A stretch of DNA of 64,000 nucleotides, from IMG/VR virus record IMGVR_UViG_3300044701_003953, positions 143,521 to 207,520 of that record; one strand, given 5' to 3'. How positions within the stretch are numbered: the stretch's first letter is position 1; the number at the start of each line of letters is the position of its first letter. Shown in pieces: positions 1-15,284 of the stretch. Under the pieces are notes generated by a model. It was not told the DNA's origin. It saw nothing but the letters and a program-made list of their open reading frames with translations, and did no database searches. The position numbers were made by a program, and so were the translations under genes.

Positions 1-116
1 CAGAAACGCTTGTTATCACGTTTCATCTTGAAGCGGATAGCATCGCCTAAGTATGCTTCTTTGTAACCACTGTCGCCTGCCATCGCATCAAGTGCTGTTT
101 GTTGTTTATCTGTCAA
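1..116 (-). CDS. folE: N-terminus of a probable GTP cyclohydrolase I (runs off the window edge)
   Basis: Manual translation from TTG at 116 with a GGAG SD: MTDKQQTALDAMAGDSGYKEAYLGDAIRFKMKRDNKRF. It resembles the N-terminus of phage FolE as I recall it and sits downstream of dpdA/queD-like genes. The catalytic part is outside the window. Confidence 0.55.
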   Translation of the reverse strand, partial: MTDKQQTALDAMAGDSGYKEAYLGDAIRFKMKRDNKRF

Positions 117-149
117 TTTTATTTCTCCGAGTTATTGTCGTGGATGACG

Positions 150-728
150 TTAGATTATTCTTATTTTCCTGAGGTCAGGATACATTTTAGCACGAGGCTC
201 TTCATTATGCGAGCCCAACATTACCAAACCTTTTTCTGCTTCTTCGGGTGTGGGTCTGTAATGATATCCCACTTCGAATACTTGCTGTTCCTGCCATGGT
301 GATATATTTAGGTCGCGGCCGTCATATCGTTGGCGGATCACTTTATTATAGAACTGTTCGTCGTCTGTGAGGATAGCACCACCACGGCCGATCTCGAGTG
401 GTTTGTCGAAACCAAAGCTCAGGCATTGTAACATACCCGGACGATACATATCACGTCTGAGCAAGCGAGCCGAATCCCATACACGTGAAGAACGGAAGCG
501 ATACTCTCCTACCCATTCTTCGTCAATGAGCTGATACTCTATTCCTAATCTTTTAAAAATCATAGGGACAGACAGATAAGTGAATGCTGTGAACTCTACT
601 TTGCTGGGCTGGTCGTAGCGGAAACAAAGTTCGAGAGCGTGTGTACAACAGTCAGTCATGATAACATAAGGCGCCCCGGTGTAGTGCGCCAATGCTTGTT
701 CGAAATCTGCTATGCTCTTAAACGACAT
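150..728 (-). CDS. Short DegT/DnrJ/EryC1/StrS-like PLP-dependent aminotransferase
   Basis: Motifs FEQALAHYTG..CTHALEL, DSA and CLSFGFDKPLEIGRGGAILTDD (SF-x3-K PLP lysine). Only 192 aa, so the C-terminal domain is missing. Confidence 0.75.
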   Translation of the reverse strand: MSFKSIADFEQALAHYTGAPYVIMTDCCTHALELCFRYDQPSKVEFTAFTYLSVPMIFKRLGIEYQLIDEEWVGEYRFRSSRVWDSARLLRRDMYRPGMLQCLSFGFDKPLEIGRGGAILTDDEQFYNKVIRQRYDGRDLNISPWQEQQVFEVGYHYRPTPEEAEKGLVMLGSHNEEPRAKMYPDLRKIRII

Positions 729-1689
729 CTCGGCGATACCATTCCCATGCGTGTTCGATCATTTCATATAGATCGTATTTAGGCCGCCAACTGCTGGCAC
801 TCATCAACTTGTCAGCACTGGCCGTCAGCAAAGCAGGATCGCCGGCACGCCGATCTCCATACTTTTCAGGCCAGCGTGTGCCAGTGACTTGTTCAGCAGT
901 CCTGACCACTTCTAAGTTGCTGGCACCACGATTGGTGCCGATGTTGTAGACACCATCGAGATCTTCTTCGATAGCCACACGGATGGCCGACGCGATATCT
1001 GCTACATGGATGTAGTCACGGACGCAAGTGCCGTCGGGCGTGTCAAAGTCAGTGCCATTGATCACGAATTCTTTTTCGTGTAGCACGGCTTCTAGGTATC
1101 TCGCGATGATGTGCGTGGCTTCTTTTTCTTGACCATGCCTGCTTCCAGGATCGGCACCACATACATTGAAGAAACGGAATGCGGTATACTTGAGCCCATA
1201 CGCCATCTTGTAGTCGGCGAGTATCTGTTCAAACATTAGCTTGCTCCAACCATAGGGAGAGATGGGCACAGTGGGTCCATCTTCCTTTAGCGGGACGATG
1301 CTGGGGTCGGGATTACCATATGTGGCCGCTGAACTAGCGAAAACGATCCTGGTCTCTGGACTGTGTTTACGGACCATATCCAAGAAACGGATGGAACGTG
1401 CCACGTTGTTTTCGTAATATTCGCCGGGGTCGGTCATGGAAGGACCTACTAGGCTAGTTCCAGCACAATGCACGATAGCACGTGGTCTATGTTCTTTAAT
1501 AGCATGTTCAACAGCCGCACTATCAAACCCATCCACGATGGTCTGGTGCCAGTTATTGGACACCGGGCGGCTGCGTCGATCTACACCGATGACCCAGTAT
1601 TTTTTCTGGTCCGCTAGTTCCAACCCAACCTGGCCACCGATGTATCCACCGGCGCCAGTGACTAGGATAGTATCAATACTTTGATTCAC
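718..1689 (-). CDS. galE: UDP-glucose 4-epimerase
   Basis: TGAGGYIG, SSAATYG, YGWSK (YxxxK), RFFNVCGA, DTPDGTCVRDYIHV, RRAGDP. Confidence 0.9.
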   Translation of the reverse strand: MNQSIDTILVTGAGGYIGGQVGLELADQKKYWVIGVDRRSRPVSNNWHQTIVDGFDSAAVEHAIKEHRPRAIVHCAGTSLVGPSMTDPGEYYENNVARSIRFLDMVRKHSPETRIVFASSAATYGNPDPSIVPLKEDGPTVPISPYGWSKLMFEQILADYKMAYGLKYTAFRFFNVCGADPGSRHGQEKEATHIIARYLEAVLHEKEFVINGTDFDTPDGTCVRDYIHVADIASAIRVAIEEDLDGVYNIGTNRGASNLEVVRTAEQVTGTRWPEKYGDRRAGDPALLTASADKLMSASSWRPKYDLYEMIEHAWEWYRRDVV

Positions 1690-2872
1690 TAGTATGCTTT
1701 CTGTAGTCTACGGTGTTGCGTAACCACTGCTCGCCTTGTCCTTCCAAGATGTCACAGATGCGATCGATGGTGCCATCGTTATAGTCTGAAATCTTGCCCA
1801 TGTCTGGATGGGGTGCTTCTAACAATGGCTTCAGTTTGTTGATAGCATCATCTAGGCTCCATGGAACGTAAAGTCGGCTAGCATCATTTGAAAAAGTTTC
1901 AGGAAAGCTACGATATGCAGGGTAAAGAACATTACACCCCAGAGTGTCGGCTTCGGATACAGTGTTAGATACCCAGTCTTGAAGAGCACAATTAAAGAGA
2001 ACACGACTATCATTAAGAAGGGCATAGTAATCATTTTTTTCCAAGTCCTCGTGTAATGACAGCAATCCGCGGGCCTGTAGGTCTCGTGTCCGCTTCATGT
2101 ATGAATCGTTGTTGCTACGCAATTTAGCGCCCGAGAAGATGGCAAACTCCACACCCGAATCGGGATAACGGCGATGCCATTCTTCGATGAGATCCATGTA
2201 AAAGTCAGGTTGCTTTTCTTGGTCCCAGCGAGCGGCAAAGCCAACCCGTAAGGCACGGTCCTGGAAAGGTTTCAATTCACCTGGCACACGGCCACGCACT
2301 TCGTCCTTGCCAAAAGCAAGTCCGGAGATGTTGTAGATTGGGGCTTCCCAGCCAGCGATTTTCATGTGTGCCACCATCTCTTCGTTGGTAGCCAGGACCG
2401 TGTCTACGAATGAGTCCACCATCTTTTCATAAGTTGACATCCACTTCTGCATGCCCCAGACATGAACGAAATCATCGGGGTCAATAGTTTGTGCAAGACA
2501 ACGAACGGCGATACGAGGGCGAAGAGCAGGATCGATTTGATCCATAATGTAAGGCAAGCTCTCGATACCGGGCTGGAACATATCTTCAAAATAGATGACA
2601 TCTTCTCCATTGACTTCTCCTGCTTTCATCTTTTTAACGAGATTCATGAGTTGGCTCATACCAAAGTAGGTTCTGCCATGAGCATCCAGGACCTGGCCAG
2701 TGACGATGGCCTTGTCGTTACTGAGTGTTTCACCTTCGACGATTTCGTAATCGATACCTCGACGCTCAAACACCGCACGATTCCACTCTTGTAACTGTAG
2801 AGTGTAACGTGCCTTGTAGGGCTCTAGGCCCATGTACCATAACTTACGCATTGTTTTTCCTGTAATTTCCAA
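1673..2872 (-). CDS. GT-B fold glycosyltransferase (start probably at MRKLWY)
   Basis: FAARWDQEKQP and QDWVSNTVSEADTLGC (E-x7-E-like GT4 signature region); directly upstream of galE. Confidence 0.75.
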   Translation of the reverse strand: MEITGKTMRKLWYMGLEPYKARYTLQLQEWNRAVFERRGIDYEIVEGETLSNDKAIVTGQVLDAHGRTYFGMSQLMNLVKKMKAGEVNGEDVIYFEDMFQPGIESLPYIMDQIDPALRPRIAVRCLAQTIDPDDFVHVWGMQKWMSTYEKMVDSFVDTVLATNEEMVAHMKIAGWEAPIYNISGLAFGKDEVRGRVPGELKPFQDRALRVGFAARWDQEKQPDFYMDLIEEWHRRYPDSGVEFAIFSGAKLRSNNDSYMKRTRDLQARGLLSLHEDLEKNDYYALLNDSRVLFNCALQDWVSNTVSEADTLGCNVLYPAYRSFPETFSNDASRLYVPWSLDDAINKLKPLLEAPHPDMGKISDYNDGTIDRICDILEGQGEQWLRNTVDYRKHTSESKY

Positions 2873-3419
2873 TGGTTAATTGCCTTACCACAAAAGGTTG
2901 ATCCAACACCGAATGCACGATGTATTTGGCCATCTTGTCGGAGTCGATCTTTGAAAGTCTAATACGATCATCAGTTGTCCTGGGAGTATCAACCAGTCCA
3001 GGCTTCACTAAGACCACATCACATCTTGCTTCGAGATCGTTCCACGCCCATTGTGATGCCATTTCTAGAGCAGCTTTTTCGGAAGCATAATGAGCCCGCC
3101 CTAAAGGGTGTTGTGGACTGTCGGGGCCCGATCTCATGTCGTTAACTATGCTGCCAATATTAACGATCTTCTTCGGCTGGTCTCTCCAACTACGCCAGAG
3201 CCTAGTAAAAATCTCAACCTGGAAAAAACGTTCATGGGCATTGTTAACGAACATGTCAGCATCGGCTGACATTTCCACGATTCTTTTTTGGGTTTCAACA
3301 TCTGATATATTAAACCCAGCACTCCGAGAGATACCGACCACGTCGTGACCGCGCTTACAAAATTCTTCAGATAAAGATTTTCCAATCCCCGAAGTATTTC
3401 CGGTCACGATGATTTTCAT
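2844..3419 (-). CDS. Short-chain dehydrogenase/reductase
   Basis: IIVTGNTSGIG, FVNNA, YASEK (YxxxK), PGLVDT. Confidence 0.85.
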   Translation of the reverse strand: MKIIVTGNTSGIGKSLSEEFCKRGHDVVGISRSAGFNISDVETQKRIVEMSADADMFVNNAHERFFQVEIFTRLWRSWRDQPKKIVNIGSIVNDMRSGPDSPQHPLGRAHYASEKAALEMASQWAWNDLEARCDVVLVKPGLVDTPRTTDDRIRLSKIDSDKMAKYIVHSVLDQPFVVRQLTIGNYRKNNA

Positions 3420-3670
3420 CTCGGTTTCCTCTCAAAACGAGGTTTGTTAGGATCACGTGGCTTCCAGTACCACATATCGCGGGCCCAGCCTTTGCCACCA
3501 ATCTTGCGCTGGAACTCGCCCCAGGGACCAAACTCTTTGTAGAGCTTGGCTTCGTCGAACGGGTGGCCGTGCTCCACACAAAACGCACGGTATTGGTCGA
3601 GATCGTCAAAGATCTGGCTGACCTCAGGTTTCATCTTAAGGTATTTTTCCAACCACTTAGGATTAGACAT
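3416..3670 (-). CDS. Hypothetical phage protein
   Basis: ORF packed between neighbours, with an AAGGA SD. Confidence 0.65.
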   Translation of the reverse strand: MSNPKWLEKYLKMKPEVSQIFDDLDQYRAFCVEHGHPFDEAKLYKEFGPWGEFQRKIGGKGWARDMWYWKPRDPNKPRFERKPR

Positions 3671-3687
3671 GCTACTTTCCTTTATAT

Positions 3688-4182
3688 TTAGACAGAAAGG
3701 GTTTGTGGACGGTGAGTTTCATATTTGATGAGGGCGCCGTTCTCACCATCTTCGGCAACCTCAATCCAGACGCTACGGCCAGGATACTTTTGTGCGATCT
3801 GGAGATACAGATCGTCAGCGATCATTTCACAGGATTTGTAGTTAAGGCTTAGAACTCCACCCTTATTATCGGGATTGGAGGGATTTCCCTGGGTATACAG
3901 GTTCTCCAGCCATCTTTTGAACTGGATGAACTCGATGTCTCGGTCGTTGTGGAACACATCGATCCACACCCTGAAATGGAAGATATGACGATGAGGATAA
4001 CCAAGGAACGAAACATCATATTCATCTCCGGTAGCGAGTTGTGGATCTTCGAGTGCCGCTGGGTATTTATGTATGCCTTCTCGGCGGAAAGTGACCCAGA
4101 TTTTGCGATCTGCTCGATCCATGATGCGTTCTACTGTGGCTCTTTGTTCTTGATTCATTTTGTTTCCGTTGGGAACGGCCAT
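3688..4182 (-). CDS. QueD/PTPS-like T-fold protein, DpdL-like (LxxxHRHxF)
   Basis: EGIH..LGYPHRHIFHF..DRDIEFI..SCEMIA..EVAEDGEN. The QueD CxxxHGH motif is replaced by LGYPHRHIF. Confidence 0.7.
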   Translation of the reverse strand: MAVPNGNKMNQEQRATVERIMDRADRKIWVTFRREGIHKYPAALEDPQLATGDEYDVSFLGYPHRHIFHFRVWIDVFHNDRDIEFIQFKRWLENLYTQGNPSNPDNKGGVLSLNYKSCEMIADDLYLQIAQKYPGRSVWIEVAEDGENGALIKYETHRPQTLSV

Positions 4183-4664
4183 CCGTTGTTGGGTTTATGT
4201 TGATAGGGTTTGATGTTTTCTTCTATAACTGTATTGTATGAATCTGCATCTACGATGTCAATCTTTACTGGACCCAAAATGTAGACACAGTCGTCTTCGA
4301 TCTCCCAATCGTGTTCTCCATCAAACAACCAGGCTGTGCCCCAACGCCCATCTTCATCTTCTACACCATCCCAGAGGCTTTGGATCTCGGCCTTTTCTTC
4401 TTCGGTGAAATCACCAAACCAAGAAAAATATACACTACACAGATCATCTAGCTCGCAACCCCACCCTACCCCGGGATCACATCTCACACGATCCACTTCG
4501 TTCGCCCAGACTTCGTCGTCCATGTCGCGGAAGCCTTGCCCCCAACGATAGGTCTCTGTGACATCAAATCCGCGCACGGTGCCATCGGGTAGGGTTTCGT
4601 AGACATCCACGAAGAACTCTACGCTTTTCTTTTCTAAAGGAGTGATGCGATATAGTTGTGCCAT
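4155..4664 (-). CDS. Acidic hypothetical protein
   Basis: 169-aa ORF tightly packed in the operon. Confidence 0.65.
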   Translation of the reverse strand: MAQLYRITPLEKKSVEFFVDVYETLPDGTVRGFDVTETYRWGQGFRDMDDEVWANEVDRVRCDPGVGWGCELDDLCSVYFSWFGDFTEEEKAEIQSLWDGVEDEDGRWGTAWLFDGEHDWEIEDDCVYILGPVKIDIVDADSYNTVIEENIKPYQHKPNNGWPFPTETK

Positions 4665-5185
4665 TATTCTGAGACTTTGTCGTCTTGATATTTAGACCAC
4701 GGCGTGAACACCGCACGATTTTTCAAGTCATGTAGGCTGTGGCACCACACACCAGGATTGGTGGCCTGGAAATCTCGGTCATCGATCTTGATGGTGGTGT
4801 TGTAATTCCAGAGTTTGGCGTAAGGCAGTTTCACGGAGATCATGGGGATGAACAAGTCATGTTCGGTGAGTTTGCCCTCCAGCAAGCCCTCGGCACAACG
4901 AAGATCGAGATCTAATGTGCAGTAGTAACCTTCTTCCAAGAAAGGCCAGATCATGTTTTCCCAATCTTCCCAGGTCTGGAAATCGTCGAATTCGGGATTG
5001 GGGAAACTCTGATTGGCACCAAAGTAGATGTGCTTGATCTCGCGCTCAGCCATGGCCACTTGCACAGTGATCTCGCTAGTTGGCCGCAAGCCAACCACGA
5101 ATAGTGTCTCCATGCCCAAGGCAGGTGTGTGTTCTACTTCGCGACCATAAAAGTAAGTCGCTGTTTCGTGTCCTGGTCTATCCAT
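4664..5185 (-). CDS. Conserved hypothetical phage protein
   Basis: 173-aa ORF whose stop overlaps the next start. Confidence 0.65.
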   Translation of the reverse strand: MDRPGHETATYFYGREVEHTPALGMETLFVVGLRPTSEITVQVAMAEREIKHIYFGANQSFPNPEFDDFQTWEDWENMIWPFLEEGYYCTLDLDLRCAEGLLEGKLTEHDLFIPMISVKLPYAKLWNYNTTIKIDDRDFQATNPGVWCHSLHDLKNRAVFTPWSKYQDDKVSE

Positions 5186-5188
5186 TTT

Positions 5189-5395
5189 TTACTCTTCGTC
5201 GAAGTTGACTCGTTCGTGCTCTTCTTCCCATTGCTTCTTCTTCATTTTAGCGATTTCGTCTTTTAAGAGCAACTTCTTTTTCTTCAGAGTCTGGAGATGT
5301 TCGTCCGAAAAGTTTCCAGACGTCTCAAGTTTAACAATTTGTTCGTCCAAAAGGCGGTGTGCTTCTTCTAGATGGGCGATCCGATTTTCATACAT
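5189..5395 (-). CDS. YdcH/DUF465-like small coiled-coil protein
   Basis: MYENRIAHLEEAHRLLDEQI..LKKKKLLLKDEI. Start moved to ATG 5395, which has a GAGGAG SD. Confidence 0.7.
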   Translation of the reverse strand: MYENRIAHLEEAHRLLDEQIVKLETSGNFSDEHLQTLKKKKLLLKDEIAKMKKKQWEEEHERVNFDEE

Positions 5396-6944
5396 TTGGG
5401 TTCTCCTCGAGTTGATCAAGTTTCGATTCGTCAAGTTCGGGTTCTTCGGAAACCTCTTCTTCTACAGTCTCAAATAAAGCGTTAAACATGGTCATGGAGT
5501 TCTTGGCTTTCTTTCCAGAGAAGCCGCGTGTGCCTACGATCTCCATCCAATATTTGTCATACTTTTCGATTATAGCTTCGCTGGTAGCGCGATCCGGTGC
5601 AGTGAAGATCTCTTCTACGATGTCTTGGAAACGATCATGGCTGGGACCTGAGTAACGCATCATGGCAGGATATTCGCCGGCGTCAAAGCGTCTATTGGCT
5701 TCTTGGACGGCAGTGATATGCTGATAGACATTATGTCCCATGAGCAAAGCATACGAGAAACTATCCCAGGATGTCTTACCTTCTTTGCCCACTTTGTTGA
5801 GATCACCGGGCTTGTAGATACAGATGTCTTTCATGCGCAACAGGTCGCTGACTGGACTGTCTTGCCATATGGGATAGATGCCGTCAGCTATCACTCCTTG
5901 CCGCCACTGTCGGGTGTCGGTGGCGTATTTTTTGTCATCGGCTGAAGGAGCCATGCGGTACGACCATTTGGAGTCGTGTTCGAAGACGTTTTCGAAGTAG
6001 ACTTGTCCGTTCGCTGTTGCGAGGAATGGACTGGCGCAGTCAAAAGAGATGGTAAACGATGGGTTGACATATTTCCTCACGGCACGTTGTAAGATAGTGA
6101 GCAAGACTGCCCACTCCAATTTTGATGTTCCCAAGAAGTGCATCCAGTCATGTTTGCCCTCCTGTAGGAGTCCATCGTAGCGCAATGCCACCAAGCGTCG
6201 TAATACTAAGTGGACATCACACATATTCTGACCACCCATAGCCCAACCGTTGAAATGCGTGTCGGGATACTTTGCGGGATCACAATATTCTTTCATCGTT
6301 TCATACCAATCATCTGCTTCAGCGTGATTAGCACCTTGTAGCACGTTGAGGAATTTCACTCCACCGTTCTTGACACCCCGACGGTGGGTCATGAAATACT
6401 CGTTGTTGTATTTTGTAGCGTTGACTGCTTCTTCGTGTGTGGTGATACCACAGGCCCGAGATGCTTTTTCATCATGCACTACCCAGGTCGGGATATCAAG
6501 GATCATGCCGTAGTCGGCGATGCCATCCAACCATTTCAGCACCGCTTCTCGTTTCTTCTGCGCTTTGGGACAACCAGAACCGGCCTTCCAATCGCCTTCC
6601 CAGAGTCCTTTAGCGATCTGGAATCCACCCGAGTCACCTAGGATCAATGTGCCAGGATCACGGTTACGCACCATGTCCTCCGACCAGTCCTGCTTGTTGA
6701 GATCTAAGTTAGCGTGTCCACCCGAGTATAGACTCCACTTATAAGGGAAAAGTCCTTTGGCATCGTTGAGCCAGTTCAACTCTTCCATGTCCTTCATGCC
6801 CGGCGGGAAACGAGCAGGATCTACATAAGGGCCGTTTACAGGGTCGCGTTGCTTGCCTATGAACGTGGCATAGAAGCCCGAGATAGCCGGCAAAAACACA
6901 GCATAGTCATTTTGTTTGGAAGTCAGGTTATCTCGGTTTGTCAT
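5388..6944 (-). CDS. dpdA: TGT-fold transglycosylase, DpdA-like (probable DNA 7-deazaguanine insertion)
   Basis: GDSGGFQ, MILDIP, VLQG, GWAMGG, HFLG, SFDCASP. Lies in an operon with FolE- and QueD-like genes. No canonical C-terminal CxCxxC zinc site is seen. Confidence 0.75.
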   Translation of the reverse strand: MTNRDNLTSKQNDYAVFLPAISGFYATFIGKQRDPVNGPYVDPARFPPGMKDMEELNWLNDAKGLFPYKWSLYSGGHANLDLNKQDWSEDMVRNRDPGTLILGDSGGFQIAKGLWEGDWKAGSGCPKAQKKREAVLKWLDGIADYGMILDIPTWVVHDEKASRACGITTHEEAVNATKYNNEYFMTHRRGVKNGGVKFLNVLQGANHAEADDWYETMKEYCDPAKYPDTHFNGWAMGGQNMCDVHLVLRRLVALRYDGLLQEGKHDWMHFLGTSKLEWAVLLTILQRAVRKYVNPSFTISFDCASPFLATANGQVYFENVFEHDSKWSYRMAPSADDKKYATDTRQWRQGVIADGIYPIWQDSPVSDLLRMKDICIYKPGDLNKVGKEGKTSWDSFSYALLMGHNVYQHITAVQEANRRFDAGEYPAMMRYSGPSHDRFQDIVEEIFTAPDRATSEAIIEKYDKYWMEIVGTRGFSGKKAKNSMTMFNALFETVEEEVSEEPELDESKLDQLEENPNV

Positions 6945-7554
6945 AGAAATGTGTAGAATTTATTAGTTCATAATCGATCGAAAAAGCATTTACTAATTTT
7001 GCCACCAATGGCGGATTCTGTTGTAACCGCTCTTTCATGAATTTTGAAATCTGTTTCGTGTCATAGTTATTCTCCGAAACATTATCCTCGACGCTGATAT
7101 CATTGATCTCGACACCAAGAAGCCATCGTATCTGATCGAGTAAGTTATGATTATACTTGAGTAATATCGGGTCAGTCAACTGTGATATATAGATGCTTTG
7201 TGGCGCGGTATGATCATCAAAGTATACGGTGTCAAAGATGATCCTTTCAGTGAGATCCGTGTAGTCTTCAACGAAGTGGTCACTACCGAAGTTCTGGCTA
7301 CATAAGTGTAAGGTAGCATATGTGGCGAAACCACTGACCCAGCGATCTACAGGATCTCTCACGAAGGCGAACATTTTTTCAAAGTGATCGCTGTCCTTGA
7401 GTATATGTAGTTCCCACCCGTTCGCTAACAAAACATTCGTGAGATAAGTGCTGGCATTCTTAGGTATGTTAAGACAAAAGGCCTTCCCATCGGGCGATCT
7501 CATCCCTCCTCCGGGCTGATAGCCTTTAGTCTTTAACCAATCGAATGATATCAC
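6928..7554 (-). CDS. Sulfotransferase-like protein
   Basis: IPKNAST (5'-PSB loop) and VRDPVDRWVSG (3'-PB motif). Confidence 0.7.
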   Translation of the reverse strand: MISFDWLKTKGYQPGGGMRSPDGKAFCLNIPKNASTYLTNVLLANGWELHILKDSDHFEKMFAFVRDPVDRWVSGFATYATLHLCSQNFGSDHFVEDYTDLTERIIFDTVYFDDHTAPQSIYISQLTDPILLKYNHNLLDQIRWLLGVEINDISVEDNVSENNYDTKQISKFMKERLQQNPPLVAKLVNAFSIDYELINSTHFYDKPR

Positions 7555-8282
7555 TTAGTTTGGGCTGGGATGATGTAAGAGTAGTCAGCGATACCAGAAT
7601 CTACAGTGATCATGGCAGCACCTTCGTCGCTGATTTTGAAAGTCTTGTCTCCGGGCAAGCTCAGGATAGCAATCACCGCCGACACAGGCCAGCTCCATGC
7701 TTTGGTCAATGAGCCCGACACACCTTGTTCAAACACGAATTCACCAGCGTGGCTGGCAGCATCGCCAAAGTAGAACTTGAGCTTGTCACCGTCGGTCTTG
7801 GCCACGAATGTGGTCTCCTCGCTGTTGGCTTGTGCCTGGAACTTGAGACGTTGGATGGATGCGGCACTGGGAACGATGTCTACGTTCCACTTCACGCCAC
7901 GGAATTTCACTGCCTTGAGTTTTTCGTTGATGATCTCAGCAGTCATGAAACGATAGTCGTTCTTGAAGTCACCGGCTTTGTTTTCAAAGTGGATACCAAC
8001 AGGAACTTTTTCTCCGTTACGATCCTGGCGCGTCACAGAGATACTGGCGTCTTCGCGATACTCGCTGATGTTGAGAACTGTGTTGAGTTTGGCCAAGTTG
8101 GGCATGCCGAATGTGCCTACGAATTCGGCCACAGGCTGTTTGAAACTGGCTTCCAGTATTACGCTACGATCTTCTGCGATAGCGTTGATGGCAGTACCAG
8201 CAGAGTCGCCGGTGACTTTGACCAGGTCGATGTTGCCTAAGCCATGTGTGTGTTGAACGATGTCTTGTAAAAAGTCTTTCAT
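7551..8282 (-). CDS. Sliding clamp (gp45-like)
   Basis: 243 aa with a beta-rich clamp-like pattern ending YIIPAQ; close to polB, with a clamp loader elsewhere in the window. Confidence 0.65.
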   Translation of the reverse strand: MKDFLQDIVQHTHGLGNIDLVKVTGDSAGTAINAIAEDRSVILEASFKQPVAEFVGTFGMPNLAKLNTVLNISEYREDASISVTRQDRNGEKVPVGIHFENKAGDFKNDYRFMTAEIINEKLKAVKFRGVKWNVDIVPSAASIQRLKFQAQANSEETTFVAKTDGDKLKFYFGDAASHAGEFVFEQGVSGSLTKAWSWPVSAVIAILSLPGDKTFKISDEGAAMITVDSGIADYSYIIPAQTK

Positions 8283-8305
8283 ATAGAGCCTCCAGTGATA
8301 GTTAG

Positions 8306-8335
8306 ATTATAGATGATTGTATTTAGATTTGTCAA
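8306..8335 (-). promoter_or_regulatory. Sigma70-like promoter
   Basis: TTGACA-18nt-TATAAT upstream of the clamp gene. Confidence 0.7.
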
Positions 8336-8338
8336 TGA

Positions 8339-9442
8339 TTATACCAATAAAATTCTTCGTTTGGCGAAATTTTGGACTTCTTTGGGCAATAGATCAAACA
8401 TTCGATCTCCTCGTAGTTTATCCATCATCAACGTATGTGCAATGGTATGGTGGAACAGATCTTCTGTGTTGCCTATCATTGATCGAGCCTGCTGATAGAC
8501 ACGTCGATTGTGATTTTGATTTCTGTCCGGCGCAAAATCAATTTCAGGCAGGAGGTCCTTTAACTCATAGGGCAAAGTCGACAAAGAAAGGAAATCCGGT
8601 CCTTCTAATACTGATGTATTTAGAGTTATAGATTTATCTCGGCACCAATCTACCAATTCTTGTAGGAACCATATATTCAGTAGTCCCAGTGTGCAAAAAA
8701 CAAATATTTCTGTGTCGGGTCTTTGCTTCCGATATGCCAGTAGAGATTCTATATTTTTTTCTGCACGATCCCAGTCTAATCCCGATCTTACCATCTGCCC
8801 GGGCTCTCCGATAGCTTCCAGACTGGCATAGACTCTTGTCTTCTTAAAATGTTTCCAAAGTTCGGTGACTTCTTTTCCTCGGTAGTTTAAAGTAGTGAGG
8901 TTGGTATTGTATCTCAATGAAATGTTTCTGCTCCGACCATTTTCGATCAATGTATCTAACAATTTCCAATGATCGGGGTTTAGCATAGGTTCGCCGCCAG
9001 TGAAATAGATTTCTGTAAGTTCTTCGTTAGTGATTCCCTCTAACATAGGCCATACATTGAATCTTTCAAATTCGAGATCTCCGACCAAACTAGTCCAACT
9101 GCTACTGAAGTTGGGACTACAGATACGGCAAGTGAGATTGCAGGTGTTGTTGTTTCTGAGGTCGAGATATTTTATCGAATCTCTTTGCCCAACATCGTCA
9201 CCATAGTTTTTCCTGTAGGATTCTAAACCATTTTGCTCGTCTTCCCAACAACCTCGACAGCCTTGGGGACATGACCCCGATAACATCTCTTGCTGTAGAT
9301 CCTTAAAAGTATCTACCCCTTGGAAATTTTCCCCAGATCTGGCTAACTTGTAATCATAGATACAGCAAGGAGCAATCTTACCGTCGGGGTAGACAGTGAT
9401 GCTATTCCAAACGGCATTACAGATAAAAGGCTTGCCTGTCAT
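8339..9442 (-). CDS. Radical SAM protein with N-terminal SPASM/twitch domain
   Basis: CNLTCRIC (CxxxCxxC), FTGGEP; N-terminal C..PDGKIAPCC..CRGC. Confidence 0.85.
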   Translation of the reverse strand: MTGKPFICNAVWNSITVYPDGKIAPCCIYDYKLARSGENFQGVDTFKDLQQEMLSGSCPQGCRGCWEDEQNGLESYRKNYGDDVGQRDSIKYLDLRNNNTCNLTCRICSPNFSSSWTSLVGDLEFERFNVWPMLEGITNEELTEIYFTGGEPMLNPDHWKLLDTLIENGRSRNISLRYNTNLTTLNYRGKEVTELWKHFKKTRVYASLEAIGEPGQMVRSGLDWDRAEKNIESLLAYRKQRPDTEIFVFCTLGLLNIWFLQELVDWCRDKSITLNTSVLEGPDFLSLSTLPYELKDLLPEIDFAPDRNQNHNRRVYQQARSMIGNTEDLFHHTIAHTLMMDKLRGDRMFDLLPKEVQNFAKRRILLV

Positions 9443-10375
9443 TTAATTGTTAGGTTTGATTGTACCCAAGACTTGGTGTGCTTTAACAGTAGTAAGTTCG
9501 CCGGGTCGTTTAAGTTCTATCCAACTTACAGCCGGTTCGAAGTCTTGGTGATTGATGATCTCAAAACCCAACATCTCGCACATAGGTATCAGCAGACTTT
9601 TTGGCATATATGTCATGTAGTATCTTTCGGCATATTCGGCCGCGGCCGGTAAGTCTCCGTTGTTGTAACTGAACAAGACCTTACCACCCGGCTTTAGCAA
9701 GTTGTATATCTGTTGTAGATAATGCTTGATGGTGTCGAGACTAAGATAGTTAAAATGGTTCCAACTAAATACGAACCCAAACTGTTCCTGTGGTAACATA
9801 GAAAAATTTTGATCCTTAATTAGATATGGGCGTATGCGACGCTGATAATCCGTGTTAAACGCTTTGACGGTAGAGTCAAGGAATTCTTGGTGAACATCTG
9901 TGACATACAAAGGGTCTCCAGCCACCAGATGTTTAGTGAACTCTCCGTCTCTGCATCCAATCTCTAGAGTGGCATATCTCCAATCAAGGTTAGCATCGAT
10001 TCTGCTCATCAATATGGGCTCAGCATGTTGCGGTATATAAAGAATACGAGCTTGCCTTACACCTTCTGCTTCGTTGTAAACAAATTCAGTTTCGTAGTTA
10101 GCGGCAAAAAACTTTTTAGTGAGTTCTTCGATATCCTGCAAGAGATTATTTGTCAGCAGGGTTTTTCTTGATTCAATGATATCAAGTTCAGCAAGTTTGA
10201 TATCAATAAGCTGTATGGTGTTATTGACTATGCTAGAATAATTTTCAGTGAGTTCATATCGATCGATGATCAATTCTAGTTTCTTTCGCAGATCTGCCAT
10301 GGCAGCAACGACTTTGCTAACATCAAAAGCTAGATCGGCGTCGTTTTTTAGTGAGACTAGTTTATTGAGTTTCAT
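9443..10375 (-). CDS. Class I SAM-dependent methyltransferase with N-terminal coiled coil
   Basis: LEIGCRDG, LLKPGG. Confidence 0.75.
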   Translation of the reverse strand: MKLNKLVSLKNDADLAFDVSKVVAAMADLRKKLELIIDRYELTENYSSIVNNTIQLIDIKLAELDIIESRKTLLTNNLLQDIEELTKKFFAANYETEFVYNEAEGVRQARILYIPQHAEPILMSRIDANLDWRYATLEIGCRDGEFTKHLVAGDPLYVTDVHQEFLDSTVKAFNTDYQRRIRPYLIKDQNFSMLPQEQFGFVFSWNHFNYLSLDTIKHYLQQIYNLLKPGGKVLFSYNNGDLPAAAEYAERYYMTYMPKSLLIPMCEMLGFEIINHQDFEPAVSWIELKRPGELTTVKAHQVLGTIKPNN

Positions 10376-10390
10376 AATATACGCCGTTAT

Positions 10391-13051
10391 TTATTGCCAC
10401 TCAAACAAGCTGTCGAAAGTTGTTTTAATCTGTGTGTGTTCTTCTATCTTCCAATCTAGCACACCTAGCAGATTCTCTACCTTTTGATCCACGATAGTGG
10501 ACTCCATGTTATCGTCGTCGAAGGGCAATTCTTTGAACCAATTTGGGATATGTAACTCGTCGGTAGGGTAAGCTACGGAAGTATATCCGAGTGGATTATC
10601 TCGGAGTTTACAGACGATGACTTTCATGCCGTCCACGATCTGCATGGAATAATTGTCTCCGTGCATTCTCTTGAGGTTATTCCAATTCATACCGGCTCTC
10701 ACGTGTCCTGGCATGTTGGCTTTGCCCAGGCGTGCTTCTTCGGCTGTGTATTTGGTCAAGTTGTTGACACGCTTGGGTGTACCTTTTTCCCAAGCCGGCC
10801 TTTCTGTGAATAACAGTTTAAAGTCCCGGACCTTCTCAATGATCTCGTCCCTGCCGGATCCTGTTAGGACCATAGTGAGCAATTCGCTGAGGAACTCTTG
10901 TACCACCTTGGGGGTGTCTGAACGCTTGAGGTCCAAGCCCATGGCCTTGACCTTGCCGGGTTTGCCGTGCGTATCCAGTCGCACACCTTCGAGATCGTAG
11001 ATCAGAACAGCGTAGCGTTTTTTCTTGATGAACAAGCCCTTGGATGCCACTAGTTCACGACCGGCAGCGATGATGGCCCCCATGTCTCTGGGACAATGGC
11101 AGGCACGTTCCATGAACGCCGGGAACGAAGCGTTTACAGAATCGGCGATAGTGTCATACAGTTGTACGCAGATCTCGCGATTCCATTCCATGCGCCCGGC
11201 CTCGACCTCGTCCTTGATAGCGGGCCAAGCAGAGAAGTACACCGAGTCGGTGTCTCCGTAGATCACGCTCTTGCCCACGTGGTCATATTCGCCAGTGATA
11301 CATTCATTGACGAACGAGTCCATGTGCTTGGCGATGATACGGCCTGTCAGTGTCGTTGATTGTCCGATACGATGGTCGAAAAAGCGACAGCCCGGATTCA
11401 AGATAGCGCCGTATAGCGAGTTCAAGTTAATCTTCTTGACTAACTGACGCTTGTCCCAGAACGCTTTGTCTTCGGGAGTCTCGGCATCTTTTTTCTTGGC
11501 TTGTAGTTCTTTGCGTTCAGCATACCATCTTTCTAGCAAACCGGGGACGATACCTTTAGCATCGTACTTGAAAATAGTGCCGTTGGCACTGAGAGTCCAG
11601 GGCTGATTACTGTCGAATACCAAGCGCCATACATTGGCTGCCGATGTGACATCCGTGGTCCCATCCTCCCAGTCGATGGTGATCTCGGTGCCAGGCTCCA
11701 TATTCATGACTGATTGATATTCGAGACTTCCGAACATGTTTTCCCAGGCGTCTGCGAAACTGCTGCCGCCAGCCATCTTGTCCTTGATATATCGATCCGT
11801 CATGATAGGCCGCAGTTGGCCCACGATGGTCTCGGGTCCCATGTTTAAAGCACGGATGGTAGAAGGATACAGACTGTTCAAGTCGATGGCGCCGATGTAT
11901 TCGTGTATGCCACGCTTGGGGTAGGCCACATAAGCACCCGCGGCTTGTGTCTCACCTTGGTCATCACGGCTGCGACGATTGGGCACCACCATGCCGCGTT
12001 GGTGTGCTTCATTGATGATGGCTTGTTCTGTGACTGCCACTGCGCCCATGGTAGTGGGCAGTAACACGGTGTTGTCGTGTGCTAGTTCGTTGGCTAGATC
12101 CAGGAACCGGAGCTTCTTGTCGATTTTGACCAAGAGCATGACGTCTTGTCGGTTGTAGTCGATGAACTTGGGGAAGTCTTTGTTGTAGAGTTGGTCCAGA
12201 GTTCCTTCATAGGCCACCTTTGATTCACCGACTTCGTATTCTCCGATGGCATCCAGACTATAGGAGTGTCGTTCTTCATAAGTGTATTTACGATACAGTT
12301 GCATATAGTCCATATGTACTCGACCGATGATGTCAAAGGTCAAGTTCTCAGCACCAAAACGTTCGAAGGTACGTTGCTTAGGATACTGTCCCCACAAGCA
12401 GAATCGTCGCGTGTCGTCTTTGCTGAGAACACGATTCACTCGCATTACGGTATACGGGATATCAAAGCCTTCTGAGTTCCACCCTGTCAGGATATCTGCG
12501 TCTTCGATGAGATCAAGGAATGTATCTAACATATCCTCTTCTCGCTCAAACAAGAAGCAATTATCAAACCCATCACAGATCTCTTGCGCCGTCTCCCAGG
12601 AATAACTCTTAGGCGGGACCACTAGCGTGACGAGTCGGTCCAACCAGTCTAAGTAAACCGTGATGGATGTGATAGGATTGAAAGGATCTTCGGGTTTGGA
12701 ATATCCGCGTTCGGGGTCGAAGTCGACCTCGATGTCGAAGAAACAAGTCTGTAGTTTAGGAGATGTCGCTCCTAGATAGTTTTCTTCGAGGCAGCGGAAG
12801 ATGGGATTGATATCTGATTCCCAGAGACGTTTTCCGGAGTTGATCCGCATCTCTTTGTGGAACTCTTTGCTGTTGCGTGTGGAAAATCTACTGACAGGAG
12901 TGCCGTAGATAGTACGGAACTTGCCTTTGTTATCGTCGTAATAGAACACATACTTGGCCGGGAACTCGCGATATTCGCGGCTACCGTTTATACGTTCCAC
13001 GACATGGATAGTATCACGCTCTCTATCAAAGAGCGCATCAATATAACTCAT
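10391..13051 (-). CDS. Family B DNA polymerase (gp43-like)
   Basis: Exonuclease motifs DIE, NSEGFD and YNRQD; polymerase motifs DLNSLYPS, KKINLNSLYG, YGDTDS and KKRY. Confidence 0.97.
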   Translation of the reverse strand: MSYIDALFDRERDTIHVVERINGSREYREFPAKYVFYYDDNKGKFRTIYGTPVSRFSTRNSKEFHKEMRINSGKRLWESDINPIFRCLEENYLGATSPKLQTCFFDIEVDFDPERGYSKPEDPFNPITSITVYLDWLDRLVTLVVPPKSYSWETAQEICDGFDNCFLFEREEDMLDTFLDLIEDADILTGWNSEGFDIPYTVMRVNRVLSKDDTRRFCLWGQYPKQRTFERFGAENLTFDIIGRVHMDYMQLYRKYTYEERHSYSLDAIGEYEVGESKVAYEGTLDQLYNKDFPKFIDYNRQDVMLLVKIDKKLRFLDLANELAHDNTVLLPTTMGAVAVTEQAIINEAHQRGMVVPNRRSRDDQGETQAAGAYVAYPKRGIHEYIGAIDLNSLYPSTIRALNMGPETIVGQLRPIMTDRYIKDKMAGGSSFADAWENMFGSLEYQSVMNMEPGTEITIDWEDGTTDVTSAANVWRLVFDSNQPWTLSANGTIFKYDAKGIVPGLLERWYAERKELQAKKKDAETPEDKAFWDKRQLVKKINLNSLYGAILNPGCRFFDHRIGQSTTLTGRIIAKHMDSFVNECITGEYDHVGKSVIYGDTDSVYFSAWPAIKDEVEAGRMEWNREICVQLYDTIADSVNASFPAFMERACHCPRDMGAIIAAGRELVASKGLFIKKKRYAVLIYDLEGVRLDTHGKPGKVKAMGLDLKRSDTPKVVQEFLSELLTMVLTGSGRDEIIEKVRDFKLLFTERPAWEKGTPKRVNNLTKYTAEEARLGKANMPGHVRAGMNWNNLKRMHGDNYSMQIVDGMKVIVCKLRDNPLGYTSVAYPTDELHIPNWFKELPFDDDNMESTIVDQKVENLLGVLDWKIEEHTQIKTTFDSLFEWQ

Positions 13052-13127
13052 AGTCCTCCTGTGGTTTATGGCCCACTGGCCGTTCTACATGCTGGTTGAG
13101 CCAGCGACTCTATTATAACAGGATCGT

Positions 13128-13388
13128 TTACAGCGTACGACCAACAGTCTCAAGGATGGTGGTCAACTCTTCGTGTTCGTGAGTGGTTTCACCGAACTTG
13201 CTCTTTTGTGCGATCTTGATCGCTTTTTTCAAGATAGCAGGTTTGACTTCTAGTTCTTCTGCGATGGCCTTGATGGTGTCATTGAGGCCGGCGCTGAGGT
13301 CTTCGACTTCTTGTAGCACAGCGATGCCTTCATTGATGAGTTGTGTGAGCTTGGCTTTCTGTTCGCCGGAAAACATTCTTGAGGACAT
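13128..13388 (-). CDS. Small DNA-binding protein (T4 DsbA/GapR-like)
   Basis: 86-aa helical protein with IKAIAEELEVKPAILKKAIK, upstream of polB. Confidence 0.5.
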   Translation of the reverse strand: MSSRMFSGEQKAKLTQLINEGIAVLQEVEDLSAGLNDTIKAIAEELEVKPAILKKAIKIAQKSKFGETTHEHEELTTILETVGRTL

Positions 13389-13412
13389 TCAAATCTCCTT
13401 GATAAAAAACAC

Positions 13413-13441
13413 AGTATAGATACTTATTTTAAGATAGTCAA
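13413..13441 (-). promoter_or_regulatory. Sigma70-like promoter
   Basis: TTGACT-17nt-TATACT; the -35 overlaps the stop codon of the upstream gene. Confidence 0.7.
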
Positions 13442-15277: not shown

Positions 15278-15284
15278 AAAACTA

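Follow-up and report, generated by a model that had tools for sequence, protein, structure and literature searches.

We analyzed a window of 64,000 nucleotides from a roughly 340-kb freshwater jumbo phage. On the minus strand, 13 consecutive genes run from a putative sliding clamp to FolE, and they overlap or are separated by gaps of at most 33 nt according to the gene calls. The only sizeable intergenic gap upstream of this run contains a promoter-like site (8306-8335, minus strand) consisting of TTGACA, 18 nt and TATAAT, with 12 of 12 matches. However, the total number of promoter-like sites in the region was not above chance, so only the position and the perfect match are notable. All of the features described below lie on the minus strand. 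The preliminary description had listed a TGT-like DpdA, a QueD paralog, an SDR, a GT-B glycosyltransferase, GalE, a DegT-like aminotransferase and a probable folE in one tightly packed run behind the sliding clamp, and our analysis confirmed that this observation is real.

The upstream edge of the run is marked by the putative sliding clamp (7551-8282, 243 aa). It is 31% identical to a gene of phage Phosso annotated as sliding clamp and 36% identical to PA5oct EST35_0314, and it follows PolB in 127 of 160 loci. Because Pfam, PDB and PHROGs gave no functional support, this assignment rests only on its position after PolB and on the homology to the Phosso gene. The next gene (6928-7554, 208 aa) encodes a carbohydrate-sulfotransferase-like protein, which matched Pfam Sulfotransfer_2 (E = 3e-5, 24.7 bits against a cut-off of 22) and a PHROG named "Galactose-3-O-sulfotransferase" (E = 2e-6). 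It is an accessory gene, present in 18 of 80 close relatives, and it co-varies with a methyltransferase, GalE and the DegT-like gene.

The gene at 5388-6944 encodes a DpdA-like protein of 518 aa, which is the presumed 7-deazaguanine DNA transglycosylase and a core member of the module. No Pfam, NCBIfam or PDB sequence hit was found for it. However, its AlphaFold model (AF2, pLDDT 90.8) has a predicted TGT fold, and the six best PDB matches are all tRNA-guanine transglycosylases (E = 8e-7 to 1e-4). The DSGG motif is invariant, with D104, S105, G107, H269 and D302 all invariant. Profile comparison by hhalign gave 96.6% to the DpdA-like gene of ACP17, 93.3% to BUCT-ZZ01 UTS52034 and 71% to DpdA3 of phiST, and the protein is 35% identical to PA5oct EST35_0316. 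It is followed by a small DUF465 protein (5189-5395; Pfam PF04325, E = 2.4e-13), whose 68-aa gene call was taken from the identical contig described below.

Protein Y (4664-5185, 173 aa) is a conserved protein without assigned function and a homolog of ACP17 ASD50402. It is a frequent member between the DpdA-like gene and DpdL, present in 31 of 80 loci of the window's clade and 57 of 80 loci of the ACP17-like clade. Fifteen of its columns are invariant, but no PDB or Pfam similarity was found, even with a profile. The next protein (4155-4664, 169 aa) had no family hit and is rare, with homologs in 5 of 80 close relatives. The QueD paralog (3688-4182) is DpdL, a QueD-like T-fold protein that is proposed to decarboxylate 7-carboxy-7-deazaguanine, and it is a core member. 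It carries the motif LGYPHRHIF, which fits the published LxxxHRHxF signature, and that motif is present in 150 of 150 homologs. A tblastn search matched the DpdL genes of phiST, ACP17, PA5oct and Phosso, and hhalign of the DpdL profile against a QueD profile gave a probability of 73.5% (E = 3e-5). A conserved 84-aa protein (3416-3670) is usually found between DpdL and the glycosyltransferase. It had no family hit, but homologs are present in that position in 73 of 80 loci of the window's clade and 22 of 80 loci of the ACP17-like clade. The short classical SDR (2844-3419, 191 aa) matched Pfam adh_short (E = 2.9e-9) and shows the TGxxxGIG, NNAH and YxxxK motifs. It is a strain-specific insert, since a homolog occurs in only 1 of 80 close relatives.

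The glycosyltransferase, which we call X (1673-2851, 392 aa), starts at the ATG at 2851 and is a core member of the module. Although X falls below the Pfam gathering thresholds, its AF2 model (pLDDT 85.5) gave 423 PDB matches led by retaining GT-B/GT4 enzymes. A Foldseek search found glycogen synthase, SenB, MshA, BshA and PimA at E-values down to 5e-13. The best viral matches are its own family, including the "glycosyl transferase family 1" protein of ACP17 at TM 0.73-0.82. R208, E212, K213 and E300 are invariant across 42 sequences that fall to 19% identity, and the motifs align to the GRLxxxK and EX7E donor-binding motifs of GT4 enzymes.

Downstream of X lies GalE, a UDP-hexose 4-epimerase (718-1689, 323 aa), which scored 284 bits against TIGR01179 (cut-off 262) and E = 1e-53 against Pfam Epimerase. 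It is an accessory gene, present near X in 48 of 80 loci of the window's clade and 30 of 80 loci of the ACP17-like clade. The DegT/DnrJ/EryC1-like protein (150-728) is real but shortened, with 192 aa against about 370. It matched Pfam PF01041 (E = 6.6e-12) in two short stretches and aligned to residues 35-98 and 177-236 of a 382-aa aminotransferase. It keeps the SFxxxK motif of the PLP-lysine, but lacks an internal segment and the C-terminal domain. This accessory gene was found in 19 of 80 close relatives, always together with GalE. Only the first 38 codons of FolE (GTP cyclohydrolase I) lie in the window (1-116). A JGI contig that is 100% identical to positions 1-16944 continues them into a 248-aa protein with a PF01227 hit, which is 57% identical to Phosso FolE. 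On this contig QueD and QueE follow, and no QueC was found.

We then explored the linkage between X and the deazaguanine genes, which is the new point of this analysis. X homologs at 20-94% identity lie beside DpdL and the DpdA-like gene in about 190 loci, which include the cultured phages PA5oct, ACP17, X1, BCSR5, Phosso and BUCT-ZZ01 as well as bacterial genomic islands. DpdL lies within 1.5 kb of X in 132 of 143 viral loci, and the DpdA-like gene lies within 5 kb in 126 of 131. Among cultured phages (50,697 phage records), 18 of the 23 records with an X homolog also carry DpdL, against 0.013 expected (Fisher p = 6e-58), so the linkage is far beyond chance. However, many of the loci are related phages, and part of the synteny is therefore inherited rather than independently maintained. 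The association survives several rearrangements, with the order DpdA-X-DpdL in ACP17 and PA5oct, X-DpdA-DpdL in X1, DpdA..DpdL-X in the present phage, and X-DpdL-DpdA in Magnetospirillum. Every one of the 28 hits among genome contigs carries a DpdA-like gene, DpdL or another deazaguanine gene (FolE) beside X. Some of them are islands on isolate chromosomes that also hold an Mrr-type nuclease, integrases and a YhhQ-like transporter.

The preliminary description had proposed a comparison of whether the glycosyltransferase tracks with dpdA or with hmC/hmU enzymes and virion genes, and the outcome favored its view. X tracks with the DpdA-like gene and DpdL, and not with ThyA-type hydroxymethylases or structural genes. 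A ThyA-family gene was absent from the window and occurred in only 1 of 160 viral loci. The cluster sits in the replication module, between PolB and RNase H. Sugar genes recur around X: GalE is present in 78 of 160 loci, and a second group-1 glycosyltransferase with a GalE-like gene occurs in 22 of 80. A distant X relative in PhiXhv-15 lies next to a Gat-QueC-like gene and an LmbE-like deacetylase. However, about half of the close relatives have no sugar-nucleotide gene next to X.

The preliminary description inferred that the phage may carry a glycosylated or amino-sugar 7-deazaguanine, and this interpretation is only partly supported by our results. The gene identifications hold, but three points must be corrected. 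The cluster belongs to the QueC-less DpdL branch, whose product in phage phiST, which has no glycosyltransferase, is plain 7-deazaguanine (PMC10516641). This base has no hydroxyl or amine side chain, so it is not obvious where a sugar would attach. The sugar-nucleotide part (GalE, DegT-like and SDR), which had been regarded as a module together with the glycosyltransferase, is accessory, and only the glycosyltransferase is core. Finally, glycosylated 7-deazaguanines are not known only from eukaryotic tRNA, as had been stated. Huimycin and the dapiramicins carry sugars on the 2-amino group of a 7-deazaguanine-derived aglycone, and in huimycin the sugar is attached by a glycosyltransferase, HuiG (PMC7439116).

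Our preferred explanation, which we consider about as likely as not, is a DpdL-type 7-deazaguanine DNA-modification cluster in which X is an integral and conserved member. FolE, QueD and QueE would make 7-carboxy-7-deazaguanine from GTP. Here the presence of the genes is shown by our analysis, whereas the chemistry follows from the established pathway. DpdL would then convert that product, probably by decarboxylation to 7-deazaguanine, as proposed but not validated in the literature. The exchange of guanine in phage DNA for the deazapurine by the DpdA-like enzyme is inferred from the predicted fold, the motifs and analogy with DpdA. The transfer of a sugar from a UDP-sugar onto the deazaguanine moiety by X is inferred from the linkage and the conserved donor-binding residues alone, without chemical data for any phage that carries X. 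X could act on the free base before insertion or on the base once it is in DNA, and the candidate attachment atoms are C7, N2, or the carboxyl if decarboxylation does not occur. Some published results are in accord with this view. PA5oct, which carries this module, has an unidentified modified G in its DNA. This DNA resists five G-containing restriction enzymes, and PA5oct is targeted by nucleases that sense hypermodified bases (PMC12191111). Co-expression of ACP17 dpdL and dpdA alone gave no dDG in Escherichia coli, and those authors suggested that other enzymes are missing (PMC10516641). HuiG is a precedent for a glycosyltransferase acting on a 7-deazaguanine aglycone.

However, other explanations should be considered. 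The DNA might end up as plain 2'-deoxy-7-deazaguanosine (dDG), while X glycosylates a phage or host protein, a lipid carrier or the cell envelope and sits in the cluster only because of shared early expression in the replication module. The DNA of phiST, which has DpdL and DpdA3 without X, is fully dDG, the same product is reported for vibriophage VP1, and 7-deazaguanine offers no obvious acceptor group. The X family is acidic (median pI 5.35), which is not expected of a DNA-binding glycosyltransferase. Its fold is that of ordinary GT4 enzymes, which act on small molecules, lipids or proteins, and it is no closer to the phage DNA alpha-glucosyltransferase than to those enzymes. The "DNA alpha-GT" of S-TIM5 ranked 35th among viral matches. 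Nevertheless, we consider this explanation unlikely. Shared timing does not explain why X stays within about 300 bp of DpdL (median) across 20-94% identity and several rearrangements, or why the X, DpdL and DpdA-like genes travel together onto bacterial genomic islands that have no other phage replication genes. In addition, the N-terminal acceptor domain has its own invariant residues, which are specific to this family.

A somewhat more doubtful possibility is that X is needed to make or insert the deazapurine but that no sugar stays in the final DNA. X might transiently activate the carboxylate of 7-carboxy-7-deazaguanine as a glycosyl ester, or act as a non-catalytic or base-presenting partner of the DpdA-like enzyme. 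This would fit the inactivity of ACP17 DpdL plus DpdA in E. coli, the position of X, which nearly always lies directly beside DpdL or the DpdA-like gene, and the much larger size of the DpdA proteins associated with X (417-540 aa) compared with phiST DpdA3 (259 aa). However, phiST DpdL and DpdA3 were also inactive in E. coli although phiST has no X, so that failure does not point to X in particular. The invariant donor-binding residues argue for real NDP-sugar use, and the recurring GalE, second glycosyltransferase, deacetylase and sulfotransferase-like genes make more sense if a sugar is kept and elaborated. It is very unlikely that X glycosylates a different base, such as 5-hydroxymethyl-cytosine or -uracil in the T4 manner, with the deazaguanine pathway as a separate, parallel modification. 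Phage DNA glycosylation has so far been described on hydroxymethyl- or hydroxy-pyrimidines, and X has the same overall GT-B fold as those enzymes. However, no ThyA-family hydroxymethylase was detectable in the window, which covers 64 kb of the 340-kb genome. The single copy among the 160 viral X loci is 47% identical to E. coli ThyA and is probably a plain thymidylate synthase. The bacterial islands also carry X, DpdL and the DpdA-like gene without any pyrimidine-modifying gene in view.

If our preferred explanation is right, the result would be virion DNA carrying a glycosyl-7-deazaguanine that blocks restriction enzymes. In the subclade of this phage, GalE, the sulfotransferase-like gene, a methyltransferase and the shortened DegT-like gene are optional additions, which probably supply or tailor the sugar. 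The occurrence of the same linkage in many other phages and in some bacteria suggests that an undescribed sugar-bearing purine may exist in DNA.

Positions 1-13051 of the window are coded entirely on the minus strand. In the direction of transcription, the genes are PolB (10391-13051), a methyltransferase (9443-10375), a radical SAM/SPASM protein (8339-9442), a putative clamp of 243 aa (7551-8282), a sulfotransferase-like protein (6928-7554), a 518-aa DpdA-like protein (5388-6944), a DUF465 protein (5189-5395), protein Y of 173 aa (4664-5185), a 169-aa protein (4155-4664), DpdL of 164 aa (3688-4182), an 84-aa protein (3416-3670), an SDR (2844-3419), the predicted glycosyltransferase X of 392 aa (1673-2851), GalE (718-1689), a DegT-like protein (150-728) and the start of FolE (1-116). 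From the clamp to FolE, neighbouring genes overlap or are at most 33 nt apart. The only real gap, 8283-8338, holds a perfect TTGACA-18-TATAAT site. The window belongs to a jumbo phage of about 338-340 kb from a JGI metagenome, and contig Ga0485299_0000003 is 100% identical over 16,944 bases. No cultured phage is close at the DNA level; a megablast of the region against the phage collection found nothing.

The clamp, named as a sliding clamp in the preliminary description, had no Pfam, PDB or functional PHROG support, and its PA5oct homolog is annotated as a structural protein detected by mass spectrometry. The label rests on the position after PolB and on the annotation in phage Phosso. Of the two genes between PolB and the clamp, the radical SAM protein has homologs in only 5 of 160 related loci, and the class I methyltransferase in 26 of 160. 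We considered whether the radical SAM protein was the QueE and rejected this, because it has no BLAST similarity to phage QueEs and the real QueE lies beyond the window.

The 518-aa protein could not be identified from sequence alone. Pfam, NCBIfam, PHROGs, phmmer against PDB and a 51-sequence profile against PDB gave nothing. Only structure prediction with Foldseek, and hhalign to the proteins of phages ACP17 and BUCT-ZZ01, were informative. The protein belongs to a large family with 964 representative clusters at 50% identity. A model built from 51 diverse members was confident (pLDDT 90.8, pTM 0.91) and showed a TGT-type (beta/alpha)8 barrel; its only PDB matches with E <= 1e-3 were six bacterial and archaeal tRNA-guanine transglycosylases, with target-normalised TM-score up to 0.53. 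The window protein reads GDSGGFQ at the DSGG(F/Y)Q motif, which contains the catalytic aspartate of TGT as in the Z. mobilis enzyme. In the 51 sequences, which fall to 27% identity, D104, S105 and G107 are invariant and G106 and Q109 are at least 90% conserved, and the same motif aligns in the ACP17 and BUCT-ZZ01 DpdA-like proteins. D302 in SFDCASP is also invariant and, by sequence comparison only, resembles the MFDCV motif of TGT that holds the second aspartate, the nucleophile. However, no cysteine is invariant or nearly invariant in this alignment, although canonical TGT has a structural zinc site formed by a Cys/His cluster, a site that may or may not be required in DpdA3-like proteins.

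At the sequence level, the BCSR5 homolog reached only E = 0.041 to PF01702. Profile comparison by hhalign linked the family to ACP17 ASD50403 (96.6%), to BUCT-ZZ01 UTS52034 (93.3%) and, weakly, to phiST DpdA3 (71%). ASD50403 is the only DpdA-like gene we saw in the ACP17 cluster, so we take it to be the dpdA that Cui et al. cloned. We therefore placed the protein in the TGT/DpdA superfamily of 7-deazaguanine transglycosylases, near the DpdA3 group but distinct from it; it is about twice the size of phiST DpdA3. A 545-aa protein of Xanthomonas phage PhiXhv-15 was not DpdA-like. BUCT-ZZ01 UTS52035 (locus L003:6010-7353), which we first grouped with the DpdA-like proteins, was rejected by hhalign (probability 0.3%), and Pfam indicated a second group-1 glycosyltransferase.

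The 164-aa QueD paralog is DpdL. It carries LGYPHRHIF, which fits the LxxxHRHxF signature, in place of the CxxxHGH of QueD, that Cui et al. used to separate DpdL, their proposed 7-carboxy-7-deazaguanine (CDG) decarboxylase, from QueD (PMC10516641). The motif is kept in all 150 homologs of the fetched loci. The protein matches the DpdL genes of phiST, ACP17, PA5oct and Phosso, with tblastn E = 2e-15 to phiST, 2e-41 to ACP17 and 9e-55 to Phosso, and the DpdL profile aligned to a QueD profile over 103 columns (hhalign 73.5%, E = 3e-5). The DpdL domain can also be fused to other sequence. In Vibrio phage Bakedbeans gp176 (L199:5212-6363), it occupies residues 257-383 behind an N-terminal domain of about 256 aa with no detectable similarity to anything tested; this gene lies next to FolE, and no X is present.

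The identical contig shows the rest of the pathway in the same phage: FolE (PF01227), QueD (PF01242) and a 296-aa QueE that is 41% identical to the BUCT-ZZ01 QueE. In this contig (L203:8843-13841, beyond the window start), the cluster continues with a phosphoribosyltransferase, a HIT protein, a peptidase S11/beta-lactamase-like protein, QueD, a MazG-like PRA-PH protein, a 140-aa HhH-GPD (DNA-glycosylase superfamily) protein without an explained role, a cupin and QueE, and an RNase H-like gene follows. E. coli QueC found nothing at E <= 0.1 in the 64-kb window or in the X loci of this family. This is therefore the QueC-less DpdL branch, whose only chemically characterised member, phiST, has all of its G replaced by dDG.

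For X, Pfam gave only a sub-threshold hit to Glyco_trans_1_2 (E = 0.009, 16.4 bits against a cut-off of 25), although two close homologs carry a precomputed PF00534 hit. A model from 42 sequences taken from IMG/VR loci, some only 19% identical, had pLDDT 85.5 and the two Rossmann-like domains of the GT-B architecture. Foldseek returned 423 PDB matches at E <= 1e-3, led by retaining GT-B enzymes: glycogen synthase, SenB, MshA (query-normalised TM 0.68), BshA, PimA and OtsA. Among viral models, a 370-aa protein, possibly the BCSR5 homolog, and the ACP17 homolog came first, at TM 0.81 and 0.73. R208, E212, K213 and E300 are invariant in the 42 sequences and align to the GRxxxxK (GRLxxxK) and EX7E donor motifs of GT4 enzymes, namely to 'GRLDHNKNP' of PglH/WlaC (6eji) and to the EX7E stretch of 8xsg. 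In the window's clade, the first acidic residue of EX7E is Asp. The N-terminal acceptor domain has its own invariant set (E10, R15, Y16, T17, D84, D90, D124, P125, D127, E142), which we have not seen described. On this evidence, X is a GT4-like glycosyltransferase by predicted fold and motifs. It is not specifically similar to the T4-type DNA glucosyltransferases: neither the alpha- nor the beta-glucosyltransferase appeared among the top 50 PDB matches, and a cyanophage protein annotated 'DNA alpha-GT' ranked only 35th among viral matches (TM 0.52). Overall charge did not settle whether X acts on DNA, because the DpdA-like family is also acidic.

The linkage is the main result. In cultured phages, X homologs lie inside the deazaguanine clusters of PA5oct-like Pseudomonas jumbo phages, ACP17, Xanthomonas phages X1 and BUDD, Burkholderia phage BCSR5, Sinorhizobium phage Phosso and Synechococcus phage BUCT-ZZ01. 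Of the 23 records with X, 18 have DpdL, and only 28 of 50,697 records have DpdL at all (p = 6e-58). Two scans of IMG/VR gave 160 loci, of which 80 are from the window's clade (69-94% identity to X) and 80 are ACP17-like (about 20% identity to the window's X). DpdL lies within 1.5 kb of X in 132 of 143 testable loci, and the DpdA-like gene lies within 5 kb in 126 of 131. FolE is present in about 65 of 80 loci in each set, and QueE in about 45-55 of 80. The consensus order is PolB, (methyltransferase), (GalE), clamp, DpdA-like, (Y), DpdL, (84-aa), X, (GalE, DegT-like), FolE, (QueD), (PRTase), QueE, then RNase H. The order changes between lineages while the X, DpdL and DpdA-like genes stay together.

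We also scanned 185,579 prokaryotic genomes and found 28 loci, each carrying a DpdA-like gene, DpdL or another deazaguanine gene (FolE) beside X. Several of these are probably mis-binned phage contigs. However, others lie on chromosomes of isolates, in contexts that look like mobile defence islands. In Magnetospirillum sulfuroxidans J10 (L197:8954-14672), the order is a MASE1 histidine kinase, a LuxR-type response regulator, an Mrr-type (Mrr_cat) nuclease, X, DpdL, DpdA-like, QueD and an integrase. In Shimia ponticola WX04 (L190:7664-16110), it is integrases, ABC-3C and AAA_15 defence-type genes, a Vut_1/YhhQ-like transporter, X, DpdA-like and a second glycosyltransferase. Bacterial loci L179-L182, L189, L191 and L193-L196 belong to the same observation. 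This may be a self-marking or restriction-modification-like system built on the same chemistry.

The preliminary description had named co-variation of the glycosyltransferase with hmC/hmU or virion glycan genes as evidence that would speak against its reading. A ThyA-family gene is absent from the window and present in only 1 of 160 viral loci, and the glycosyltransferase does not track with hmC/hmU or virion glycan genes. Thus, the observed grouping of the glycosyltransferase with the deazaguanine genes holds. The interpretation, a sugar-bearing deazaguanine in DNA, is partly supported, since it passes this check while the product is unproven.

DpdL can occur without X, as in phiST, Rhizobium phage RHph_I1_18 and Vibrio phage Bakedbeans. 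In this family, X essentially never occurs without the deazaguanine genes, and X thus looks like an add-on to the dDG pathway. The sugar-nucleotide genes are optional: in the window's clade, GalE occurs in 48 of 80 loci, the DegT-like gene in 19, the sulfotransferase-like gene in 18 and the SDR in 1. GalE scored 284.3 bits against the cut-off of 262.3 of the equivalog model TIGR01179, over residues 8-320. The DegT-like gene always comes with GalE, and usually with the methyltransferase, the sulfotransferase-like gene and Y. Its product is a 192-aa remnant of a fold-type I PLP enzyme of about 370 aa. It aligns to residues 35-98 and 177-236 of a 382-aa homolog, so the segment between and the C-terminal domain are missing, and all NCBIfam scores are far below their cut-offs. 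The PLP-lysine motif is kept, with 'SFGFDKPLEIGRGGAILTDD' aligning to 'SFHPRKTLTTGEGGAVVTND' of 9bgp, but aminotransferase activity is doubtful.

The sulfotransferase-like gene overlaps the start of the DpdA-like gene and matches Pfam Sulfotransfer_2 and a PHROG named 'Galactose-3-O-sulfotransferase'. Among relatives it co-varies with the methyltransferase, GalE and the DegT-like gene, which hints at a sulfated or otherwise tailored sugar in this subclade. An alternative set, found in a subclade, in 22 of the 80 loci L009-L088 (for example L036:16299-17585), and including BUCT-ZZ01 UTS52035, is a second, weakly scoring group-1 glycosyltransferase of about 448 aa after QueE, usually followed by a GalE-like gene. 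It almost never occurs together with the DegT-like gene, and may add a second sugar or an alternative one. Two conserved proteins without an assigned function also belong to the module. Y has 15 invariant columns, and neither a 40-sequence profile against PDB nor Pfam scans of all 40 members gave a credible hit; the 84-aa protein nearly always lies between DpdL and X in the window's clade.

In PhiXhv-15 (L169:5747-8981), a more distant relative of X lies next to an LmbE-like deacetylase and a gene annotated as a glutamine amidotransferase (GlmS), whose C-terminal part matches E. coli QueC (E = 4e-13), so that it looks like a Gat-QueC fusion. This would be a second, preQ0/G+-type deazaguanine context for the glycosyltransferase family, seen in one lineage only.

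Elsewhere in the window, a 386-aa protein (15285-16445, minus strand) gave a weak PHROG hit to PAPS reductase (E = 1.4e-5); phages X1 and BCSR5 carry a PAPS-reductase-family (PP-loop) gene inside their deazaguanine clusters, without an established relation to this protein. The phage also encodes an isocitrate lyase (17309-18592, minus strand; Pfam ICL, E = 8e-108), a glyoxylate-shunt enzyme that is an unusual auxiliary metabolic gene for a phage. Other cell-like genes (24946-28162, 34921-36207 and 36266-36955 on the minus strand, 37100-39016 on the plus strand) are a ClpB-type double AAA+ chaperone and a DnaJ co-chaperone, a TctA tricarboxylate-transporter subunit, a LuxR-type regulator, PhoH, and a DctP-like solute-binding protein.

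We compared the cluster with known systems. Cui et al. have described the dDG pathway of Cellulophaga phage phiST, composed of FolE, QueD, QueE, DpdL and DpdA3 (PMC10516641). It is likewise QueC-less, its DpdL carries the LxxxHRHxF signature, it has a distant TGT-like transglycosylase, and it lies next to the DNA polymerase genes with a MazG-like gene nearby. However, phiST has no X, a small P-loop ATPase sits between DpdL and DpdA3, its DpdA3 has only 259 aa, and it has no GalE, DegT-like or sulfotransferase-like gene. Its DNA product is known to be dDG, while a product here can only be inferred. The clusters of the cultured phages PA5oct (EST35_0316-0322), ACP17 (ASD50402-50406), X1, BCSR5, Phosso and BUCT-ZZ01 hold the same X, DpdL and DpdA-like genes with FolE and QueE, in or near the replication module, and BUCT-ZZ01 X is 66% identical to the window's X. 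PA5oct DNA carries a modified G of unidentified chemistry. Gene order differs among them, and none of the annotated clusters that we read shows the GalE, DegT-like, SDR and sulfotransferase set beside X.

The logic resembles that of T4-type hmC glucosylation, in that a phage-encoded, predicted GT-B enzyme lies next to base-replacement genes and would put a UDP-sugar on a non-canonical base, giving protection from restriction. However, the T4 acceptor is the hydroxyl of a hydroxymethyl-pyrimidine, and no ThyA-family hydroxymethylase was found in the window. In eukaryotic tRNA, mannosyl-queuosine and galactosyl-queuosine arise when a sugar is added to a 7-deazaguanine derivative that a TGT-family enzyme has already placed in a nucleic acid (PMC11755703). 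The mannosyltransferase is the GT4-family protein GTDC1. That system acts on RNA, and its acceptor is a hydroxyl of the cyclopentenediol side chain of queuosine, which this QueC-less pathway cannot make; Pfam and NCBIfam scans showed no detectable sequence relationship to X. In huimycin and dapiramicin biosynthesis, a glycosyltransferase, HuiG, is encoded beside FolE, QueD and QueE homologs and attaches a hexosamine directly to a 7-deazaguanine-derived base at the 2-amino group, which shows that such chemistry exists (PMC7439116; bioRxiv 10.64898/2026.04.15.718813). These compounds are actinomycete secondary metabolites made from a preQ0-derived free aglycone, with no DpdA and no DNA involved. 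In the bacterial Dpd restriction-modification system, DpdA/B/C with DpdD-K, a DpdA-family enzyme puts 7-deazaguanines into the cell's own DNA from a genomic island (PMC10164549). The Magnetospirillum and Shimia loci look similar in outline, with an Mrr-type nuclease and integrases. The Dpd system uses preQ0 and dADG and has no DpdL or glycosyltransferase; the islands found here carry X and DpdL instead.

Our analysis demonstrates the genes, their predicted folds and motifs, and their linkage, whereas everything about the reactions is drawn from elsewhere or inferred. That FolE, QueD and QueE make 7-carboxy-7-deazaguanine follows from the established pathway. That DpdL decarboxylates it, and that a DpdA3-type enzyme swaps the base into DNA after replication, has been proposed by others and remains unvalidated (PMC10516641). 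Base exchange on DNA by the 518-aa protein is likewise inferred. It is our inference that X uses a UDP-sugar to glycosylate the deazaguanine. X could act on the free base, as HuiG does on the huimycin aglycone (PMC7439116), with the enlarged DpdA-like enzyme then inserting the decorated base, or it could act on the base in DNA, as T4 glucosyltransferases do on hmC. The weak point is the acceptor, because 7-deazaguanine has no side-chain hydroxyl. The options are the nucleophilic C7 (a C-glycoside), N2, or the carboxyl if decarboxylation does not happen in these phages. A 7-hydroxymethyl-7-deazaguanine acceptor was also considered, but nothing supports it, and phiST DNA carries dDG. The phosphoribosyltransferase, HIT and MazG-like genes suggest steps at the nucleotide level and leave open a pre-replicative route for getting the base into DNA. 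Among the indirect experimental hints, ACP17 dpdL and dpdA alone gave no dDG in E. coli, which glycosylation of the deazaguanine by X would also explain. However, phiST, which has no X, failed in the same experiment.

The components belong to known kinds, and what is new is the glycosyltransferase in the DpdL-type clusters. The eight described DNA 7-deazaguanines carry no sugar, and our literature searches found no paper describing a glycosylated deazaguanine in DNA or noting the glycosyltransferase in these clusters. The module is abundant, with more than 7,000 metagenomic homologs found for each of the two proteins searched, and it occurs in phages already in culture, including the therapy candidate PA5oct.

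A bolder reading, which is possible but which we hold only tentatively, is that the X, DpdL and DpdA-like genes make a glycosylated 7-deazaguanine in DNA, which would be the first sugar-bearing purine in any genome. It might be a C-glycoside at the electron-rich C7 that decarboxylation frees, which would explain why X travels with DpdL, or an N-linked sugar, as in huimycin. The sugar would vary between lineages, with GalE, a second glycosyltransferase, a sulfotransferase-like gene or a deacetylase as the variable parts. The sugar-decorated DNA bases known so far are pyrimidines. A glycosyl-deazaguanine would extend DNA glycosylation to purines and add a new branch to the 7-deazaguanine family. 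It would also provide a glycosyltransferase that acts on deazapurines and a possible new restriction-modification-like system, in which bacteria would use the module, on mobile islands next to an Mrr-type nuclease, to mark their own DNA.
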